DNA from: Trichosphaerium sp. ATCC 40318
Taxonomy: Eukaryota > Protista > Tubulinea
Length of the DNA: 64,000 nt
Direction: 5' to 3'
NCBI GenBank assembly: GCA_038496445.1
Contig: JALMLS010000062.1
Span: 558,001 to 622,000, forward strand
Position numbers and translations under genes: made by a program. Shown here piece after piece: positions 7,930-63,362 of this stretch (position 1 is the first letter of the stretch; every line of letters begins with the position of its first letter). A model generated the notes under the pieces. The model worked only from the letters and a program-made list of their open reading frames with translations, made no database searches and was not told the DNA's origin.

Positions 7930-9381
7930 ATGTCAGCAAAGATTGGCCCTTACAAACGTACTAAAACAAGACATTATACTTTATTAGATACTCCTCATGA
8001 TATACAACGTTATTTATGCACTTTCGACGCTGAAACGTTTTTTAAATTCAACTGTCTGTCTAAAAGGGCAGCAATCAACACTCATTACAATACCAAGCTC
8101 GAACAGAGTGGTATTTGGCTATATTGGTACCCTTCCGGGAAGCTACAGTATAATGTTATGATGGCAGATGGAAAGAAGAATGGTGAAACTAAGGGGTGGT
8201 ACGAGTCTGGAGGACTCAAGTTTCTTTGTATGTATCTTAATGATAAGGCTAATGGTGTACGAAAGTCGTGGCATGAAAATGGAGAACTGAAGTTTGAAAC
8301 AATGTATGTTAATGGCAGTAGACATGGTGTTGAAACGCTATGGTTTGACAATGGACAAGTTGAGGCACGGTGTAATTGGGTTGATGATAAGCTTGAAGGT
8401 TTACAACATAGATGGTTCAAGAGTGGTCTAAAAAAGGCAGAGTGTATGTATGTTAAGGGTAAAAAGAATGGTGAGTTAAAGTTGTGGAGTACCAATGGAC
8501 AAATTGTTCAACATGGTTTTTATATTGATAGTAAACAACATGGTGAGTGTAAATGGTGGTATGATAGTGGTCAACTCATGGAACATTCTATTTTTCTATA
8601 TGGTAAGAAGAATGGAAAGCGTTCAGAGTGGTATGAGAATGGACAACTTAAAACTGAAGTTGTTTTTGTCAATGGCAAAGAGAATGGCGAGTTTAATGAA
8701 TGGCATGAGAATGGACAACGTAAAGCGCAGTGTATGTACAATAATGGTGATGAGGAAGGCGAGCTTATTACTTGGTTTGAGAATGGAAGTCGTAGGTGTC
8801 AACGTACTTTTGTTAAAGGTGTGAAGCAAGGACAACATAATCAGTGGTATGAAAATGGACAACTACACATTCAGAATAACTTTATTGCTGGCAAGGAAAG
8901 TGGCATGTACAAGCAATGGTATGAAACTGGAGTACTTGAACTACAAACTGTTTATGTTGATGGTAAGGAGAATGGAACGCATGATGAGTGGTATGAGAAT
9001 GGAAAAGTGAGGTTACAATGCATCTTTATCAATGGTAAGAAGAATGGTAAGTATGAGGAGTGGTATGAGAACGGAAAAGTCAAGGAACAATCGTTGCATG
9101 TTGATGATAAGTACCAAGGTGAGGTAAAGCAGTGGTATGAAAACGGGCAGCTCAGGGTAAACTGTATGTATGTTGATGGCAAAAAACATGGTGAGGCTAA
9201 GGCATGGTACGAGAACGGAAAGTTGAAAGTTCAAGGCATGTTTGAAAATGGGTTAATGAATGGCGAATTTAAGAAGTGGTATGAGAATGGTCAAATTCAC
9301 TCCATAAGCTTTTACCACCATGACATAAAACATGGTGTAAAGGAGTGGGCATCAGATGGTCATTTAAAGACATGGGGTTGA
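7930..9381 (+). CDS. Intronless F-box-like + MORN_2 (YwqK-type) repeat protein
   Basis: 483-aa ORF with ~17 repeats of 24 aa (WYENGQL...Y.NGK.NG). The N-terminus LLDTPHDIQRYL..F...LSKR is F-box-like and shared with two paralogs in this window. Confidence 0.85.
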   Translation: MSAKIGPYKRTKTRHYTLLDTPHDIQRYLCTFDAETFFKFNCLSKRAAINTHYNTKLEQSGIWLYWYPSGKLQYNVMMADGKKNGETKGWYESGGLKFLCMYLNDKANGVRKSWHENGELKFETMYVNGSRHGVETLWFDNGQVEARCNWVDDKLEGLQHRWFKSGLKKAECMYVKGKKNGELKLWSTNGQIVQHGFYIDSKQHGECKWWYDSGQLMEHSIFLYGKKNGKRSEWYENGQLKTEVVFVNGKENGEFNEWHENGQRKAQCMYNNGDEEGELITWFENGSRRCQRTFVKGVKQGQHNQWYENGQLHIQNNFIAGKESGMYKQWYETGVLELQTVYVDGKENGTHDEWYENGKVRLQCIFINGKKNGKYEEWYENGKVKEQSLHVDDKYQGEVKQWYENGQLRVNCMYVDGKKHGEAKAWYENGKLKVQGMFENGLMNGEFKKWYENGQIHSISFYHHDIKHGVKEWASDGHLKTWG

Positions 9382-22047: not shown

Positions 22048-22800
22048 TTAGTTTTTATTTTCTTCTACTATTATTATATCATGCGACATAATGTCACTTT
22101 CTTTGATACCCTCAATATATTTACAGTTTTCTATAACTTCACCTCTTTTATTCCATTCCCTAAATTCACCATGTTTCATGTTATCCTTATAAAAGCAATT
22201 ATAACACAACTGGCCATTAATAAAATATTGCTTAAATTCTCCTTCTTTGAATCCATTTTGGTAAAAACAGTGTTCGTTTAACTGTCCGTTAGAAAACCAC
22301 GATTTAAATTCACCATCCTTATGACCATGTTTAAAAGTACATTCTCTTTGCTTAGTACCATCGTTGTAATACAGTATAAACGATCCATGCAGCACTCTGT
22401 TTAAGTAATCCTTACTTGACTTAATAGCACCACTTTGATAAAATTCCTTACAAGTTCCTTCTTTTTTACCGTCCTTATACATAATACTACTTCGTAATAT
22501 ACCATTATGCCAATAAATATCATATTGTCCATGTAGTTTACCATTACTAAAGATGCACTGAACCCATTTATGGCGTTCAGAAACGTTACAACTAAAATTC
22601 TCTCTACGTCGTACTTTTTCTCTTGTATTTTCATGCCACTTCTTGAAAGTACCATGCTTTTGTAATGCGCTATTAAACCGTGACGTTGTAGCTGTCTGGA
22701 AGCAAAGTAAAGGCCACTTGAAGAATATCTCTTTATCAATATTCTCAAATTCGTAATGGAGTTCAACCGGCATATCAAGAAGATGAATGCTCTCACTGAA
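22048..22800 (-). CDS. F-box-like + MORN_2 repeat protein (5' end uncertain)
   Basis: HLLDMPVELHYE...KWPLL...RFNSALQKHG followed by ~7 MORN_2 repeats. Body is intronless. Upstream ATG or exon not resolved. Confidence 0.75.
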   Translation of the reverse strand, partial: FSESIHLLDMPVELHYEFENIDKEIFFKWPLLCFQTATTSRFNSALQKHGTFKKWHENTREKVRRRENFSCNVSERHKWVQCIFSNGKLHGQYDIYWHNGILRSSIMYKDGKKEGTCKEFYQSGAIKSSKDYLNRVLHGSFILYYNDGTKQRECTFKHGHKDGEFKSWFSNGQLNEHCFYQNGFKEGEFKQYFINGQLCYNCFYKDNMKHGEFREWNKRGEVIENCKYIEGIKESDIMSHDIIIVEENKN

Positions 22801-23255
22801 CAAAAAAAAAATAGTTAGTCCAAAAACGTGATTAGTAATCGAAAAATCGAACAAAGTTTTAGCGCCTGAGCAAACATACTAGTGGCAGATAACTGGTGTC
22901 GCCCCATAGCAAAGGTAAGCGCTCACTACCTGAACTGTTTTCCAATTCAGACGCCATAGCAACGCTACTTAAAACCTAGAGCGTAGGATAGTTTTACACG
23001 TCGTTTCAAATAAAAAATGTAAAGAAGTGTGAGAACTCTAACCTTTCTGCCATTTTTGAATATAACACACGTAAATGCGTATATTTTATACAGTTTAAAT
23101 CTCGCTAGTAAGCTGCAAACAACAAAATTCAGCTGAAAGTAAAAAAAAACTGACTGAAATACTTCCATTGACTTTTTTGCTGGGCTTTTTTTTTTGTTTT
23201 ATTGAATTTTGAGATGATTTGTACAAGATTGCTCTAGGATTTTCGTTGATCGTAA

Positions 23256-29648: not shown

Positions 29649-29752
29649 TGGAACAGGTAACATGACACTGTAATTTCATAGCGAAGCCTATTTTGCCGCT
29701 GGAACAGGTAACATGACACTGTAATTTCATAGCGAAGCCTATTTTGCCGCTG
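29649..29752. repeat. Perfect 51-bp direct tandem duplication
   Basis: TGGAACAGGTAACATGACACTGTAATTTCATAGCGAAGCCTATTTTGCCGC occurs at 29649 and 29700. Confidence 0.95.
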
Positions 29753-29908
29753 AAAATTAAGGTGTTTTTCAGTCAATGTATTTCCTGTAAACCGAGCAAA
29801 AAACAAGTTCCTTATTCGTTACTAAACTTCCACATGCGCTCTGTGGCCGAAATACAGGTTAGCGAAGAGCTTGAAACTAATGATAGTGTACAAAACAACA
29901 AAAGAAAA

Positions 29909-30915
29909 ATGACTACGTTATTTTCACGTTTCTCGCATCTACTAGGCCTCCCAGTGGAGTTACATAGCGAAATAGTTGATTTAGACGACGATTTGGATTT
30001 ACTTTGGCCAATCTTATCAAAACGCACAGCAACGACAACAAGGTTTGATTCAGAGTTAAACAGACATGGTAAATGGTTTAGACATAACAGCAGAGGTCAT
30101 CTTTTGGAGGAGTGTAATTATTCTAACGGTAAAATTGACGGAGAACGGTTTTGTGTTTGTAGTGAAGGAAGAGAATGGAAACAGTTCTATTATGTCAAAG
30201 GCAAAAAACATGGAGAGTATAAAAGATGGCATGATGAGCAATTAAGGGAACAATGTAATTATGTTGATGATAAGCGTGATGGAGAGTATATGTTCTTTTA
30301 TCCAAATGGAGAACTTAAATCATCATGTAATTATGTTAATGATATCCGAGATGGAGAATACAAAAAGTGGAAAGAAAACGGAATATTATCTGAGCAGTGC
30401 TTTTACAGCAATAATGAATTACATGGTGAGAGCAAGAGATAGTATGAAAACGGTACAATGGCGTGTGAGTGTAAGTATGTAAAAGATAAGCTAGAAGGAG
30501 AGTACAAGACATGGTTTTCCAATGAACAGTTAGAAGAGAAGTGCTATTACAACGATGGCGAGCGTGAAGGAGAAAGGCAAAGTTGGTATCGTGATGTACA
30601 GAGGCATAGGCATTGTTGCTATGCCAACGGTAAGCTAGAAGGAGAATACAAGCATTGGTATAGAGGAGGACAAATAGCTAGCAAAGCAATTATGTTGCTG
30701 GTAGGCTAGACGGAGAGTACAAGACATGGTTTTCCAATGGACAGTTAGAAGAGAAGCGCTATTACAACAATGGCAAGCGTGAAGGAGAAAGTCAAAGTTG
30801 GTATCGTGATGGACAGAGGCATGAGCACTGTCGCTACACCAATGGTAATCTCGAAGAAGAGTGCCAAGTATTGGATTATATTGTTGATATTGATGCAACT
30901 AAGAAATATGAATAA
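29909..30915 (+). pseudogene. F-box-like + MORN_2 repeat pseudogene
   Basis: HLLGLPVELHSEI...WPILSKR plus MORN repeats. In-frame TAG at 30440-30442 where Trp is expected (KR*YENG). 1-nt deletion near 30680. Internal duplication 30490/30705. Confidence 0.82.
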
Positions 30916-31235: not shown

Positions 31236-32922
31236 TCACGTGAAATAATAGCAATCGTTGTTTTGTCTCAAAATTTTGTTTTGAAAGTACAAGCATTGCT
31301 TCAGTAGACAAGGTAGACAAAAAGTGACACAACTATTTAAAAGAAAAAAATGTGCAACAGAATATATGATTAAATATTTATTATAAAGGTAAACCGTTAC
31401 AGAATAACCTGTCACGTACACACACAATACGATTAAGGAAACGAAAACACCTAAATAAAAAAAAAAGGAAATCCAAATAAAAAAAAAATAAATAGGACCC
31501 CCTTTGTCGGTTCATACCCAACACGACCAAACAAGGCACCTTTTAAAAACCTAAATGTTGAGAGGAAAGAGGAAAGATCTTTGGTTTGTCCCACAACACA
31601 ACACCAAGAGATCCACCTACAATAAAAAAACTCTCCAAAAAAAAAACCTCCTTTCTCGTGCCATATTTTTTTTCAACCAAAAAATGACAGACTTTCTACG
31701 CTGCTCCTCTCTTACGCCAATGAGATGAATTGATGGTCCATCAAATCTAGCGCAGTCGGAGGGTTGTCTCCTGGATAAAGACAAGCCTTCACAAAATCAA
31801 CCAGCAAGTGTTCCATACAGCTGCCTTGGCGAGGGAACCTTTTCAGGAACACATTCTTCACCTTTGAAAAAGCGAGGTAGTTAGCCTCAAACTTATTGGC
31901 ACTGGAATCCTCCTCAACAGGCACGTAGTCGTCACCTAACATGAGTCGCATTATCGTTACGCCGACTGCGAAAAGGTCGTTTCGTGCTGTGTACCCTCCA
32001 TACTCAGCGAAGGGCGACACAAAACCAGGAGTGCCCATAAAGTTTCTGAGCTTTCGAGTATCCTTTACATACCCGGAAGCACCGAAATCTGTGAGCCCTA
32101 CGGTCCCACCAGGAAACATCAAGATGTTATCTGGCGTTACATTGTTATGCACAATGCCATCGTCGTGTAGCTGAGAAAGCGTAGCTAACAGATCTGAAGC
32201 TACGCGTGCTGCAGATTCTATTGCTGGCTTTTTAAGCACATCTGACAGGGACCCGTACGCTCTGGGCATGGCAATAGCAACGCCATGGTCACAACGTAGA
32301 AAGCCAAGGGGTTTTACAATGCCTTTGTACTCGAGACTATCTGCGAAGTCGTATTCGCGCTCCTAGAGAAGTTGAGTAAGTATTTACGTCGTTTGAAACT
32401 AAAAAAAGCAAAAAGAAAAAAAAAAAGTACTTACAAGTGCCTTGGCATCCTCTGCGAATGATTCAGCAGTTCTATTTGCTGTGTCAATTACTTTGAGAGC
32501 TATGCTCTCGTCGGTATCGTTTCGCCGCGCTTTTAATACACGACACCTCCTGCTACTTCCGAGTAACTTCGCGGACGTTATTGTTGCCCAATCGGCACTT
32601 TGATTACTGCATTTCCTGTATGCAGAGACAGCGAAGCGAGCGATTGAACGAAATAATTTAGACATAGCGTTGTTACAGTAATACACGAGGTAAAAAAAGC
32701 TGTTAAGTAGAACTAAGTGAGGGAGTTGGCGGCAATTGTGCAACCGATAGTTTTCATAACTTTCATAAAAATCTTCTTTTTTTGATGAATTGGGAAAACA
32801 AAGTGAATCGGCATACCAAAGAAATACGTCTGACAGAATTTAGGAAACGCATGCGAATTGGCACGCCAAAAAAATTAAGCAGTGGCACGTGTGGGCCTCT
32901 CACAGAATAAATTCCTTTCAAA
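31236..32922 (-). repeat. ~1.7 kb segment duplicated in inverted orientation at 61704-63362
   Basis: Near-identical in the CDS, intron and promoter; 3' flank more diverged. Confidence 0.93.
31712..32665 (-). CDS. Protein kinase-like protein (probable pseudokinase), copy 1, one intron
   Basis: IALK, DFG, GTPGFVSP and DLFAVG are present, but the catalytic loop is HNNVTPDN and there is no GxGxxG. Confidence 0.85.
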
Positions 32923-37449: not shown

Positions 37450-39376
37450 TTAGTCTTCTTCGTATGCTGTCCAAAGAAATATTTGACGTGATTCTATCCA
37501 AGTGCAGTTCACTATCGCATCTTTTGTTATACCGTCAACGTTCTTTATGCCACAGGCATACTCTACAAAAACCAGTTAACACAGAGAGCACTAAAATACA
37601 AAAAGAGTACCTTCGACAGCTTCAGTTTTATCAAGCTCCATATCTGAGATAACGTTGAATGGTCTTCCTATCAATCTGCACTCTTTACGTCTAAGTTGAA
37701 GCTTTAGTAAAGAGACAGAAGGAGGAAGACGCAACCAAAAAACAAAAAGAAGAAACAAACTGGAAAGAATAAAGAAAAACTCAAGAAAGAAGCGAGGTGA
37801 GTTAATGTTACCCTGTAAGTTTTCCAAGTAACTTGTTTGCAAAAACAATTTGATTTGAACCATTCATTAATGCTATAGCGATATCACAATTAGCATCTAA
37901 TCCAAGAATAGACTCTTGATACTTAGATGTTATCATAAAAGTGTACTCATCACCTTGCTTCATATATTCACTAAACAAAACAACAAAGGGGTTAGTGGCT
38001 TGTTGATAGATTGGGATTTGTTGAATATGAAGTTGGTTGTGTACAATCGTACATTACATTAGATAGGTCATCATCATTAGCAATTGTCTTCCGTGTTTGT
38101 TTTCCATTTAATCTTACAGCAACAATATTAAGGTCAGGAATCTGAAAATCTTGTTTCGGGAAAAACGTTCGTGTCCTAGGTACTATGTTAACAAAATCTT
38201 GAAGCATTGTCAAAAATTATGTGCATTACTGTGCAAGCACATGATGAATTACAGAAAAGGTTGTAAAGTGAAACTTTTGCAGAAAAAAAGTGTTCATTGC
38301 AACTTGGAAAATGTTGTTTACTCGAAGTAAGTATTGATTATTCTCTAAATAATGCGTGCCTCTTTAGCATAGATTCTCTGCTATCGTTTTCTAATACGAA
38401 TCCATTTGCTACAACGTCTTGATAGTGCACACGAACAACGAACCGTTCTAAGAAAGAAACTGTCAATAACAGAGAGTAGAAGCTTCGTTTCAATTAATAC
38501 CTTGATACACGAGTGTGCTATGTTTATCTAGGTAGTAAATCAAGTTAGATATTTGTATTTGGTATCACGTGCGTACTCTTTTTTAAAAAGTTAGAGATCC
38601 CTTTTGATTTTTTAGAAATATCCTTGTCTTGGCTAAGTTGTCTTTTGGGTACTCCAAGAAGAGTTATATCTTTTTGTATACCAATGAAATGAGTTACAAC
38701 AGTATTGTCACTTGGATCTGCTCTTAGTCCCATCATCTCAAACTGATTCAAGAAAGGCACTCCGTCTTTTCTGTAATTTAATAGCTCCTACAAACAACAC
38801 GTTATTTTTCGCGTTATCTTGATTAGACTTACGATTGTAACTCTGTCTCCTGTCTTCAAAGCTGCTCTTATTTCATTTACAGCGTCTTCATTGGTGCCAG
38901 GGCCTTGTAGAAACCTACAGTTATTGCCCAAGACCTCCTTTTTTGAGTAAAGCGTCAACTTTTCAAATTCGCCTTTAAATTATGTTTACAAATCATTCAT
39001 GACACGTGATATTCACGTACTGTTTGCGAATATAATAGGATTATCTGGGCGACGTGCATCTATCAAACTTGTTAGCAATAAAAGCCGAAAATATCACTGC
39101 TCAATTAAAACTCCACTTCAGCCTATAGCTATGCTATGGGCCTTTATAGTTTGAACACGAAGTAAGAATATTTGAACATTAAATTTCATTACAACAAATA
39201 AAAAAACCCAAAAGACACCAACGTGTTGTAAAAGTAAAAGCTGTTTACAAACTAAAACCGGCAACCAACTTTGTACCTGTTACAAGCATACTATGCTTTA
39301 ACGCTCCAATATCAGGGTATTGCGCTTTTACAAATGGATATAAATGTTTAATCTCTTTAGTGCTTGACGAGCCCAT
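37450..39376 (-). CDS. LOV-domain blue-light sensor with C-terminal PAS-like domain
   Basis: Spliced [39 protein letters not shown]...ELLNYRKDGVPFLN...HFIGIQKDIT. C-terminal AIALMNGSNQIVFANKLLGKLTG...LIGRPF. Middle exons uncertain. Confidence 0.88.
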
Positions 39377-39660
39377 GGCGTTTTAACAAAAATGACGGCC
39401 AAAGCACTGCAGTTTGTGAAGTTTTCTTTTGTGTACACAAGTTTTACACGCCCGAAGAACTAAAAACACGCTAAAGGAATAGACGGTCGAGAAAAAAAAG
39501 CGAAGCAATGAAGTATTTTTAGAACGGAAAAATTAAATTAAACCAAAAAAGTTCATCTAAAAAAAAAACCGTTCCAACTGAACCTACACTCTTCTTCCGT
39601 TTGTAGAGTGGAGATTTATTATTTACTAGATTACTACGATACTTGTACGGCGAAGGTTAA

Positions 39661-41608
39661 TCATAATTCTAGGATTCCAGGGAAGAAAGGTGAAGTGCCG
39701 TTATTTGGAGGTGTTTTAATACCAAGGATCTCACCTATCAAGTTAAAAATTTCCGTGTTGTTAACGTGTGGTAAGGAACTTCCTGGTTTAAACTTGGATC
39801 CTAAAGCAATAAACTAAGACTACTAAACAAGCACCCAATAAATACAGAATACTGTACTTACCATGTGCTACAAGAATAGCTTGCATGTCAGGAAGATCAG
39901 GGTCGTAACCGTGATTACCTTTGCTCAACCAAGAATCCCTATTCTTCAAAATTGAATAACCTTCATCAGCTAGAGCTAAAGAAAGAATAAGCATGTGTAT
40001 TAAGTTTTTAGTTTCCACTGGTCGTATGAACGTTTTTACATGTGTTTATAATGTAACATGCCTGTTATAGGAGGTATTCGTCTATTGTGTTGCCAGTGAT
40101 ACTTTTCTGGAATATCTTCTTTTAACCAAGGAGTAATATGTGGCGTCCTACAAACAACGTTACAGCGACACATAAAGCGTATAGAGGTATTACCTTTCAA
40201 GTGCATCCATTACACCTGCCGTTACAGCCTCATCATTCGACCAAATTTGAGGTACAGGACCGTAGTCACTGATATTAACTTGAAACAGAAAGTTAAAAAA
40301 AAGAAAAAGAAAACCAGGCTTGAACGTACTGCTCGAAAGAAAAGGGGCCAATACATCATCAAGATAAATAACCTAGTATTATATAAGCTAAATTTTAACT
40401 CTACTGGGTGGTGCTTAACAATAAAATAGAAAGAAAACTTACTTTATCTGCAGGTGTGCTTGTCATACCGTGATCGCTAGTTACAATTATTTGAACGTCA
40501 TCCCTTGTATCAATACTGGCATTTGATAGTTCTGAGATCAAATACTGTAATGCGTCATCAACATATGCAATAGCTTCTGGCATTTCCGGAGCTTCTGGAC
40601 CAAACTCATGGCCATAACTGTCGACTTTTGAAAAGTACAACTGAACAGAATTTGTCAAAAAAAAAATATCCTATTGTTTTTGGCTTACTGTTACAAACTG
40701 AGGTCTCTCGTCAACGTCTCCGGTTAACCATTTGATTATAGTATCTATACGCTCCTTCATAGGTATAGAGCTATCGAATTTAACCCAGAAATTAGGGTAG
40801 CGGCCATTTATTTCGATGTCAGATCCAGGCCAGAAAAAACAACCAGACTTAATACCAAAATCTTGAACAACATTCCATAGAGGGTGACCTCCCCACCACC
40901 TAGGCTCTGTAGCTATTGGTGCAGAGTACTTAAAAGAAGCATCAAATATAGGATCGTAAAAAGCGTTTGCCACAATCCCATGACTCTCAGCGTAAAGACC
41001 AGTTGCTATAAAAAGTTAGGATCTTACGTAATCGTATTGTGGTGATTCTGAATCCAGTGACCTTGCAGTGTAGAAGGCAAAAAACCGTGAAGAACAGCGT
41101 ACCTATTGTATAATGATTTGGAAACGTCTTTGTTGGAAAAATACTTTTGAGAGGCGCAGAAAAACCTTCCTAAACACGTGTCATTATTCGAGAAATCACG
41201 TGTAAAACACTTATTAATGATATTACCTTTGCTAGTTTAGAAAGTACTGGGTGAGGTAATGTATCATTCTGCAAGTACTCCCAGCGATAGCCATCGAGTG
41301 ATACAAGGATAACAAGTGGTTTTTTGATGACAGTATGGTGAAAGCACGATTTATCGCCAATACATACTGACACAGCGATTATAGATGCAATAATGAGCGG
41401 TACAGCAATAGCAGCAGTCTTGTACCAAATAAATTAGACAAAAGGTCTTATTTTATCGAATCCACGTACAATACAAAACGCCTTGCGCTTGCTGGTGGTT
41501 TGTGGCTCATTGTACGTTAATATCAGGTCATCTTCGCTTAGGAGCTGATAATATTAACATACGGTAGTTGTTGAGGTGTACCTGTATATCATCTTTATCC
41601 TCGGCCAT
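39661..41608 (-). CDS. Type II membrane ectonucleotide pyrophosphatase/phosphodiesterase (ENPP family)
   Basis: N-terminal TM segment. Motifs [53 protein letters not shown]. Confidence 0.95.
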
Positions 41609-61703: not shown

Positions 61704-63362
61704 TTTTGAAAGGAATTTATTCTGTGAGTGGCCCACACGTGCCACGGCTTAATTTTTTTGGCGTGCCAATTCGCATGCGTTTCCTAAATTCTGTAAGACG
61801 TATTTCTTTGGTATGCCGATTCACTTTGTTTTCCCAATTCATCAAAAAAAGAAGATTTTTATGAAAGTTATGAAAACTATCGGTTGCACGATTGCCGCCA
61901 ACTCCCTCACTTAGTTCTACTTAACAGCTTTTTTTACCTCGTGTATTACTGTAACAACGCTATGTCTAAATTATTTCGTTCAATCGCTCGCTTCGCTGTC
62001 TCTGCATACAGGAAATGCAGTAATCAAAGTGCCGATTGGGCAACAATAACGTCCGCGAAGTTACTCGGAAGTAGCAGGAGGTGTCGTGTATTAAAAGCGC
62101 GGCGAAATGATACCGACGAGAGTATAGCTCTCAAAGTAATTGACGCAGTGAATAGAACTGCTGAATCATTCGCAGAGGATGCCAAGGCACTTGTAAGTAC
62201 TTTTTTTTCTTTTTGCTTTTTTTAGTTTCAAACGACGTAAATACTTACTCAACTTCTCTAGGAGCGCGAATACGACTTCGCAGATAGTCTCGAGTACAAA
62301 GGCATTGTAAAGCCCCTTGGCTTTCTACGTTGTGACCATGGCGTTGCTATTGCCATGCCCAGAGCGTACGGGTCCCTGTCAGATGTGCTTAAAAAGCCAG
62401 CAATAGAATCTGCAGCACGCGTAGCTTCAGATCTGTTAGCTACGCTTTCTCAGCTACACGATGATGGCATTGTGCATAACAATGTAACGCCAGATAACAT
62501 CTTGATGTTTCCTGGTGGGGCCGTACGGCTCACAGATTTCGGTGCTTCCGGGTATGTAAAGGATACTCGAAAGCTCAGAAACTTTATGGGCACTCCTGGT
62601 TTTGTGTCGCCCTTCGCTGAGTATGGAGGGTACACAGCACGAAACGACCTTTTCGCAGTCGGCGTAACGATAATGCGACTCATGTTAGGTGACGACTACG
62701 TGCCTGTTGAGGAGGATTCCAGTGCCAATGAGTTTGAGGCTAACTACCTCGCTTTTTCAAAGGTGAAGAATGTGTTCCTGAAAAGGTTCCCTCGCCAAGG
62801 CAGCTGTATGGAACACTTGCTGGTTGATTTTGTGAAGGCTTGTCTTTATCCAGGAGACAACCCTCCGACTGCGCTTGATTTGATGGACCATCATTTCATC
62901 TCGTTGGCGTAAGAGAGGAGCAGCGTAGAAAGTCTGCCATTTTTTTTGGTAGAAAAAAATATGGCACTGAGAAAGGAGTTTTTTTTTTTGAGAGTTTTTT
63001 TATTGTAGGTGGATCTCTTGGTGTTGTGTTGTGGGACAAACCAAAGATCTTTCCTCTTTCCTCTCAACTTTTAGGTTTTTAAAAGGTACCCTTGTTGGTT
63101 GTGCGTTGGGGACAGAACCGACAAAGGCGTCCTATATTTTTTTTTTTTTTGAAGATTTTCTTTTTTTTATTTAGGTATTTCCGTTTCCTTAATCGTATTG
63201 TGTGTACGTGACAGGTTATTCTGCAACGGCTTGCTCTTAATAAAATAAATAATCCTTATTAATTCTGTTGCACGTTTTTCTCATAGTTGTAATTTCTCTT
63301 GTGTCTACTGAAGCAACACTTGTTATTACATTTTTACAAATGATTGCTATTATTTCACGTGA
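61704..63362 (+). repeat. Inverted copy of 31236-32922
   Basis: Direct reverse-complement comparison. Confidence 0.93.
61962..62912 (+). CDS. Protein kinase-like protein (probable pseudokinase), copy 2; intron 62193-62261
   Basis: About six amino-acid differences from copy 1. Same HNN catalytic loop. Confidence 0.85.

Follow-up and report, generated by a model that had tools for sequence, protein, structure and literature searches.

The 64-kb window analysed here is AT-rich (G+C 36.6%) and carries, on its minus strand, an intron-containing gene for a predicted LOV-PB1-PAS protein. The gene runs from 39376 to 37450 in ten exons and encodes 359 amino acids, with a coding length of 1080 nt including the stop codon (37450..39376, minus strand). 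We delineated it from reading frames and splice sites and then from homologues; the exon model was built by hand and corrected against these homologues, with the alignment to its nearest paralogue, P0001, serving as a check. Over residues 1 to 359 the two proteins are 40% identical (311 bits, 1e-107), with one gap of some 46 residues in the alignment. The G+C content of the gene (0.366, and 0.303 at third positions) is close to that of the P0001 transcript (0.362 and 0.316, respectively). The start codon at 39376 lies in a GCCATGG context with an in-frame stop three codons 5′ of it, and the 359 codons run through all ten exons free of stops and frameshifts. Nine introns of 45–217 nt with consistent phases interrupt the coding sequence; eight of them are GT-AG and one is GC-AG. 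Splicing and expression of the gene are predictions from homology.

The exons, all on the minus strand, follow the domain order of the protein. Exon 1 (39277..39376) contributes the start codon, the sequence MGSSSTK and an N-terminal cap with the family-invariant pair Y20-P21, and is supported by the 5′ in-frame stop and by the retention of MG and the invariant columns. The first LOV strands, with DNPIIFAN, lie in exon 2 (39021..39059), placed by alignment to P0001 and to a second paralogue, P0196. Exon 3 (38833..38972) encodes the LOV core with the motif GNNCRFLQG and the Cys65 codon at 38919-38917, and is recognized by Pfam PAS_9 and by its similarity to phy3 LOV2; exon 4 (38577..38787) encodes the second half of the domain with N97, N107 and Q131 (38676-38674), for which both Pfam PAS_9 and LOV structures in the PDB provide matches. 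At its end, exon 4 runs into a lysine-rich linker at the position that SAM occupies in relatives, SAM itself being absent. Exon 5 (38501..38527) is a 27-nt micro-exon of this linker, the last residue of which is the conserved Gln before PB1 in the alignment with P0001 and P0196; because skipping it would keep the frame, its inclusion is a prediction. PB1 strands 1-2 and helix 1, including Arg177 (38436-38434), come from exon 6 (38360..38447), which ends at a GC donor (38359-38358) selected by the P0001 alignment score. Exon 7 (38053..38175) provides PB1 strands 3-4 with the second acidic cluster, NDDDL (38078-38064), as placed by the family alignment, and exon 8 (37812..37970), supported by hhalign and the P0001 alignment, provides the end of PB1 and the first strands of the C-terminal PAS domain. 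The PAS helices and an ISDMELDKT motif in common with P0001 are encoded by exon 9 (37611..37690), and the last PAS strands, an LWTAY motif and the TAA stop (37452-37450) by exon 10 (37450..37562).

An earlier note on this DNA had given the span 37450-39376 and the Cys codon 38917-38919, both of which our model reproduces along with the stop at its end, and the peptides that it quoted from the middle and C-terminal regions are found in the translation. The reading of the middle exons called for correction: exon 6 extends to 38360, at the GC donor, and exon 7 begins at 38175.

On the 5′ side, the LOV gene is preceded on the same strand by an ectonucleotide pyrophosphatase/phosphodiesterase-type gene (39660-41000 and beyond, minus), with an exon reading frame at 40671-40973 that matches Pfam Phosphodiest (1e-18); no more than some 290 bp separate its stop codon from the ATG of the LOV gene. 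Elsewhere in the window, MORN_2 repeats occur in three long open reading frames, at 7930-9381 (+; 483 aa, MORN_2 6e-56), 22048-22854 (-) and 29744-30442 (+), which suggests that MORN-repeat genes are clustered locally. Two weak PAS-like matches, at 32402-32839 (-) and 61797-62222 (+), were considered and rejected, as they belong to no Pfam family and are near-identical repeat copies. With about 140 open codons each, inverted and 29 kb apart, they probably represent a repeat or mobile element present in two copies.

The relatives of the LOV protein define a family with a recurrent domain order. A search with exon 4 of 1.84 billion representative proteins, which scores only part of its candidates, gave P0001 (452 aa) as the best match and then other eukaryotic LOV proteins. 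P0001 derives from a 1428-nt JGI transcript contig, and P0003 and P0196 from MMETSP transcripts. The domain order is legible from Pfam in P0012, with PAS_9 at residues 64-161, SAM at 171-235, PB1 at 289-353 and PAS at 375-424; its PB1 domain scores 27.6 bits against a cut-off of 23.6, which P0035 and P0117 also pass. All named members of this LOV-SAM-PB1-PAS family are amoebozoan (Acanthamoeba castellanii, Balamuthia mandrillaris, Filamoeba and, with a RasGAP domain, Planoprotostelium), and the predicted protein of the window is a SAM-deleted member of it. The earlier note had assumed a probably non-photosynthetic protist, which agrees with the amoebozoan setting indicated by these named relatives. 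It had also described the architecture as unrecognized; the family is in fact visible in public data, and LOV, SAM and PB1 occur together in Physarum LovA (PMC4758236).

Closer matches did not emerge from the searches. No identical or near-identical protein was found in two database searches that score part of their candidates, a profile search including the window exons gave no relative closer than those known, neither P0003 nor a long open reading frame lying within one exon of the window gave an exact match, and a region-limited search with the PB1-PAS part of P0001 retrieved P0001 itself only. Such blanks mean little, because the scoring is partial and a known relative, P0003, was missed. 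The literature searched contained neither a description of the LOV-SAM-PB1-PAS arrangement nor a bench test of such a protein, nor a biochemically characterized amoebozoan blue-light receptor. P0001 (positions 1-1359 of its transcript) continues after its PAS domain into a Lys/Arg-rich polybasic tail of about 45 residues, which the window protein and P0196 lack; this tail could be a copy-specific nuclear-localization or membrane-binding signal.

The N terminus of the protein, MGSSSTK, fits the N-myristoylation pattern of an initial Met-Gly, a small third residue and Ser/Thr as the sixth. The full pattern recurs in 22 of 33 relatives and an MG start in 27 of the 33, a frequency of glycine at position 2 that is far above chance and supports lipidation as a family trait. 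The cap between this motif and the LOV core is also conserved across the family, with two invariant residues, Tyr20-Pro21 in P0001 numbering. In the full-length model of P0001, it forms two confident helices ahead of the LOV core, directly after the predicted myristoylated Gly. Our literature search found no description of this family-specific cap.

The LOV domain is the best-defined part of the protein. Exon 3 (38833-38970, minus), compared with solved LOV domains, matches Adiantum phy3 LOV2 (E 6.5e-10), then phototropins and aureochromes, and GNNCRFLQG is identical to phy3 LOV2 in the alignment. Exon 4 matches the C-terminal halves of solved LOV domains (E 1.7e-5 and weaker) with the flavin-contact residues N, N and Q aligned, and its loop between the last two LOV strands is three residues longer than usual. 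Taken singly, exons 3 and 4 score 20.5 and 19.8 bits with Pfam PAS_9, below the cut-off of 27 because each exon holds only half a domain. The flavin contacts are all present, in family-invariant columns: N64, R66 and Q69 of the motif, the helix Arg R82, the strand Asn residues N97 and N107, and the strand-I Gln Q131. Across 28 aligned relatives, conservation reaches 90% or more in 42 columns, of which the window protein retains 35. All LOV positions are among those retained (N64-G70, R82, N97, N107 and Q131 included); changes of the window protein at conserved sites include E28H and E58K, besides that of a PB1 lysine. From the complete set of LOV positions and the matches to solved domains, we infer that the LOV domain is a competent flavin binder.

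The middle and C-terminal regions are more divergent, and Pfam applied to single window exons calls neither PB1 nor a C-terminal PAS domain. Profile comparisons reach further. In hhalign, the clade of the window protein matches the PB1-PAS tails of ten canonical members, which themselves pass Pfam PB1, with a probability of 94% (E 1e-7) over 129 columns that extend into the first PAS strands. A profile built from 27 sequences matches, in its first 90 positions, the solved PB1 domains of PKC-iota (3.3e-7), TFG, MEKK2, Bem1, NBR1, MEKK3, Cdc24 and p62; positions 105-190 of the same profile match PAS domains, including those of DosP and CitA. Direct sequence search with the C-terminal half matched P0001 and P0003 only, and an ESM Atlas search with the PB1-PAS part gave generic PAS clusters only. 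DosP was the best PAS match of the profile, and we therefore considered a haem-binding second PAS domain; the PAS domain of the window protein has no His, which leaves this candidate unsupported.

Structural support comes from the paralogue P0001, whose PB1 and PAS domains share 29% and 38% identity, respectively, with those of the window protein. An AlphaFold2 model of P0001:205-410 (mean pLDDT 71) has the strand-helix order of PB1, followed by a PAS domain with one poorly modelled loop; the full-length model reaches a pLDDT of 78.8 and a pTM of 0.68. With Foldseek, the best match of the 205-410 model is the PB1 domain of NBR1 (target TM 0.75). With VIA-align, PKC-iota PB1 superposes on it over 81 residues (Z 12.6, rmsd 1.7 Å), all of the top 15 hits are PB1 domains and other beta-grasp folds stay below 9.7, whereas residues 100-206 of the model match PAS domains at Z about 9. 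The window PB1 region aligns to that of P0001 without large gaps. Together, the profiles and the paralogue model support a divergent PB1 domain of beta-grasp fold in the predicted middle region and a PAS domain at the predicted C terminus.

The domain assignments of the earlier note are borne out by these results: a myristoylation consensus in MGSSSTK, which a majority of the relatives also have; an intact GNNCRFLQG adduct motif with its conserved N and Q, which lies on the minus strand with all flavin contacts aligned; a PB1-like middle region and a PAS-like C terminus; and the lack of an enzymatic output, the window protein having neither an enzyme domain nor a DNA-binding domain.

The PB1 domain departs from the canonical type in its charge motifs. 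The strand-1 Lys of type II/B PB1 domains, which does not vary among the 27 sequences of the tail alignment and is present in 96% of the full-length set, is Arg177 in the window protein. Of the type I/A OPCA motif, the first acidic cluster is absent (RLNGKQT), as it also is in P0001 and P0196, and the second (DDD, within NDDDL) is kept.

This copy is also set apart by the loss of SAM. A SAM HMM built from nine relatives recognizes the domain in all of the roughly 30 family members and finds no match in the window protein; nor did it detect a SAM remnant in any frame of the 64-kb window near the gene. The family-invariant columns W147 and G175 are gaps in the window protein, and SAM is replaced by a linker of 35 residues, nine of them basic and two acidic, which still aligns with the SAM-flanking sequence of the paralogues. 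A hidden SAM exon was rejected, as the flanking introns, of 49 and 53 nt, are too short and no frame matches the SAM HMM. In the family tree, the window protein groups with P0001 as its sister (100/99), and P0196 is the next to join them; because P0001 and P0196 both carry SAM, the predicted absence of the domain here is shown to be a secondary loss.

We interpret the locus as a functional gene for a membrane-tethered FMN photosensor that would signal by binding partners and not by self-polymerization, a reading to which we assign a probability of roughly two in three. In the proposed mechanism, N-myristoylation of Gly2 would hold the LOV domain at the membrane, and blue light would drive formation of a Cys65-FMN adduct. 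Gln131 would relay the adduct to the N-cap helices and to the basic post-LOV linker, as adduct formation is relayed to flanking regions in phototropin LOV2 and related LOV sensors, and this relay would alter binding by PB1 and PAS. The protein would then more likely pair with OPCA-bearing PB1 proteins or with PAS proteins, such as the paralogues that carry SAM, and serve there as a modulating subunit or a terminal one. The earlier note had envisaged polymerization as an output; for this copy it is less likely, because SAM is lost, the PB1 Lys is replaced by Arg and the first OPCA cluster is missing, so that the protein is probably unable to form head-to-tail polymers on its own.

A different reading is that the gene is a decaying or silent paralogue, in which the intact LOV domain reflects recent ancestry and not present use. 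It would account for the absence of a SAM domain that all of about 30 relatives possess and for the eroded charge motifs of PB1, with its near-invariant Lys changed to Arg, two losses that could mark relaxed constraint. It would also account for E28H and E58K at conserved sites and, as a mutated GT, for the GC donor of the 184-nt intron 38359-38176, of which the sequence, GCACGC, is one base off the GTACGC donor of intron 4. It would fit, too, with the lack of a matching protein among the transcriptome-derived sequences retrieved in the partially scored searches. However, the 359 codons form an intact frame at no more than 40% identity to the nearest paralogue, which argues that the copy is old and has been kept open. 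All LOV invariants are retained, and so are the PAS motifs, in a domain of 38% identity. Introns of the GC-AG type form a normal minority, and the blank in the transcriptome-derived sequences carries little weight, given that the partial-scoring searches overlooked P0003. We therefore consider decay unlikely.

The same intron bears on a second alternative, in which the gene is active and the mature product is another one. All GT donors within exon 6 are in phase 0: a junction of 38398 to 38141 would use a canonical GT donor at 38397 and a cag acceptor at 38142, both of which look acceptable, and would delete 24 PB1 residues. If the 184-nt intron were instead left unspliced, the frame would end after eight more codons, giving a form of 208 residues with LOV and half of PB1, in effect a short LOV protein. 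The first form stays in frame and the second soon meets a stop, but the conservation of the affected segment makes them, even taken jointly, improbable as the main product. The 24 residues are kept in P0001 and P0196, are encoded by the window in frame on both sides of the intron, and correspond to PB1 helix 1 in the P0001 model; the codon rebuilt at the GC-AG junction encodes an Arg conserved in the window protein, P0001 and P0196. A GT-AG-only gene model (335 aa) was rejected, as it loses this segment, which both paralogues retain, and reaches 280 bits against P0001 compared with 311 bits for the GC-AG model. On the strength of the conserved segment being in frame on both sides and of this difference in score, we infer that 38359-38176 is spliced as a GC-AG intron. 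A U12-type intron was also rejected for this donor, as GCACGC does not resemble the ATCC-type consensus by eye. Finally, it is very improbable that SAM is missing because the assembly collapsed or dropped part of what would truly be an ordinary LOV-SAM-PB1-PAS gene, given a clean frame through the linker, normal short introns on either side of it, a linker that aligns with the SAM flanks of the paralogues, and a sequence without N runs or breaks.

One speculative and rather doubtful extension of the favoured reading is that the SAM-less copy acts as a capping or antagonist subunit: myristoylated and light-sensitive like its paralogues, it would be unable to extend SAM or PB1 chains and would end or tune the assemblies of the paralogues at the membrane. 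Were this true, the ratio of copies would determine how large a light-induced signalling cluster becomes or how long it lasts. In a related and equally speculative reading, the N-cap would be released by light and act as a myristoyl switch. More broadly, the family combines a textbook LOV domain and a conserved lipidation signal with pure interaction modules, which suggests an output that may be membrane-based and assembly-driven, unlike that of kinases or transcription factors. As a naturally occurring variant in which SAM is deleted and PB1 is blunted, the window copy could help to separate the contribution of each module, and with its compact 359 residues it is a candidate from which membrane tools for optogenetics might be made. 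Since public data already contain the family, the copy by itself adds limited novelty.

Among known systems, phy3 LOV2 and phot1/2 provide the closest solved LOV sequences to that of the window protein. Unlike phototropins and the plant PAS/LOV proteins, it lacks a kinase and a second LOV domain, has no Cys motif in its second PAS domain, and adds an N-terminal lipidation motif and PB1. LOV proteins without an enzymatic output are known from plants in the twin-LOV PLP/LLP proteins. The canonical PB1 scaffolds (PKC-iota/Par6, p62/SQSTM1, NBR1 and Bem1/Cdc24) share the beta-grasp fold of the P0001 model (Z 12.6 to 10, rmsd 1.7-2.5 Å over about 80 residues); the window PB1 differs from them in having Arg for the strand-1 Lys and in lacking the first OPCA cluster (D-x-D/E-G-D), with DDD only.

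A membrane-based LOV output has a precedent in BcLOV4, which is cytosolic in the dark and on illumination binds anionic lipids electrostatically (PMC6099885). In BcLOV4 and the fungal RGS-LOV proteins, the LOV domain controls plasma-membrane association and not catalysis, and basic stretches adjoin the LOV core, as they do in the window protein (PMC6099885). The window protein differs in its putative constitutive myristoyl anchor and in lacking an RGS or DUF domain.

Closer in lineage is LovA of Physarum polycephalum, a RasGAP-PB1-PAS_9-SAM-PB1 protein proposed to be an unconventional blue-light receptor (Schaap et al. 2015, PMC4758236) and known only from sequence. Both proteins join an amoebozoan LOV domain (PAS_9, NCRFLQ) to PB1, and LovA adds SAM; going by the description of LovA, the window protein differs in having no RasGAP, no SAM, one PB1 domain where LovA has two, and a C-terminal PAS domain. 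Closest of all are the amoebozoan LOV-SAM-PB1-PAS proteins, which are themselves known from sequence: the A. castellanii ‘SAM domain containing protein’ (P0160), the Balamuthia ‘Phototropin’ (P0072), a Filamoeba protein (MMETSP0413, P0053), P0001 and P0196. The window protein lacks their SAM domain, has Arg in place of their PB1 strand-1 Lys and ends without the basic tail of P0001, but it shares with them the MG start, the YP-containing N-cap, the same flavin-contact residues and the succession of PB1 and then PAS.
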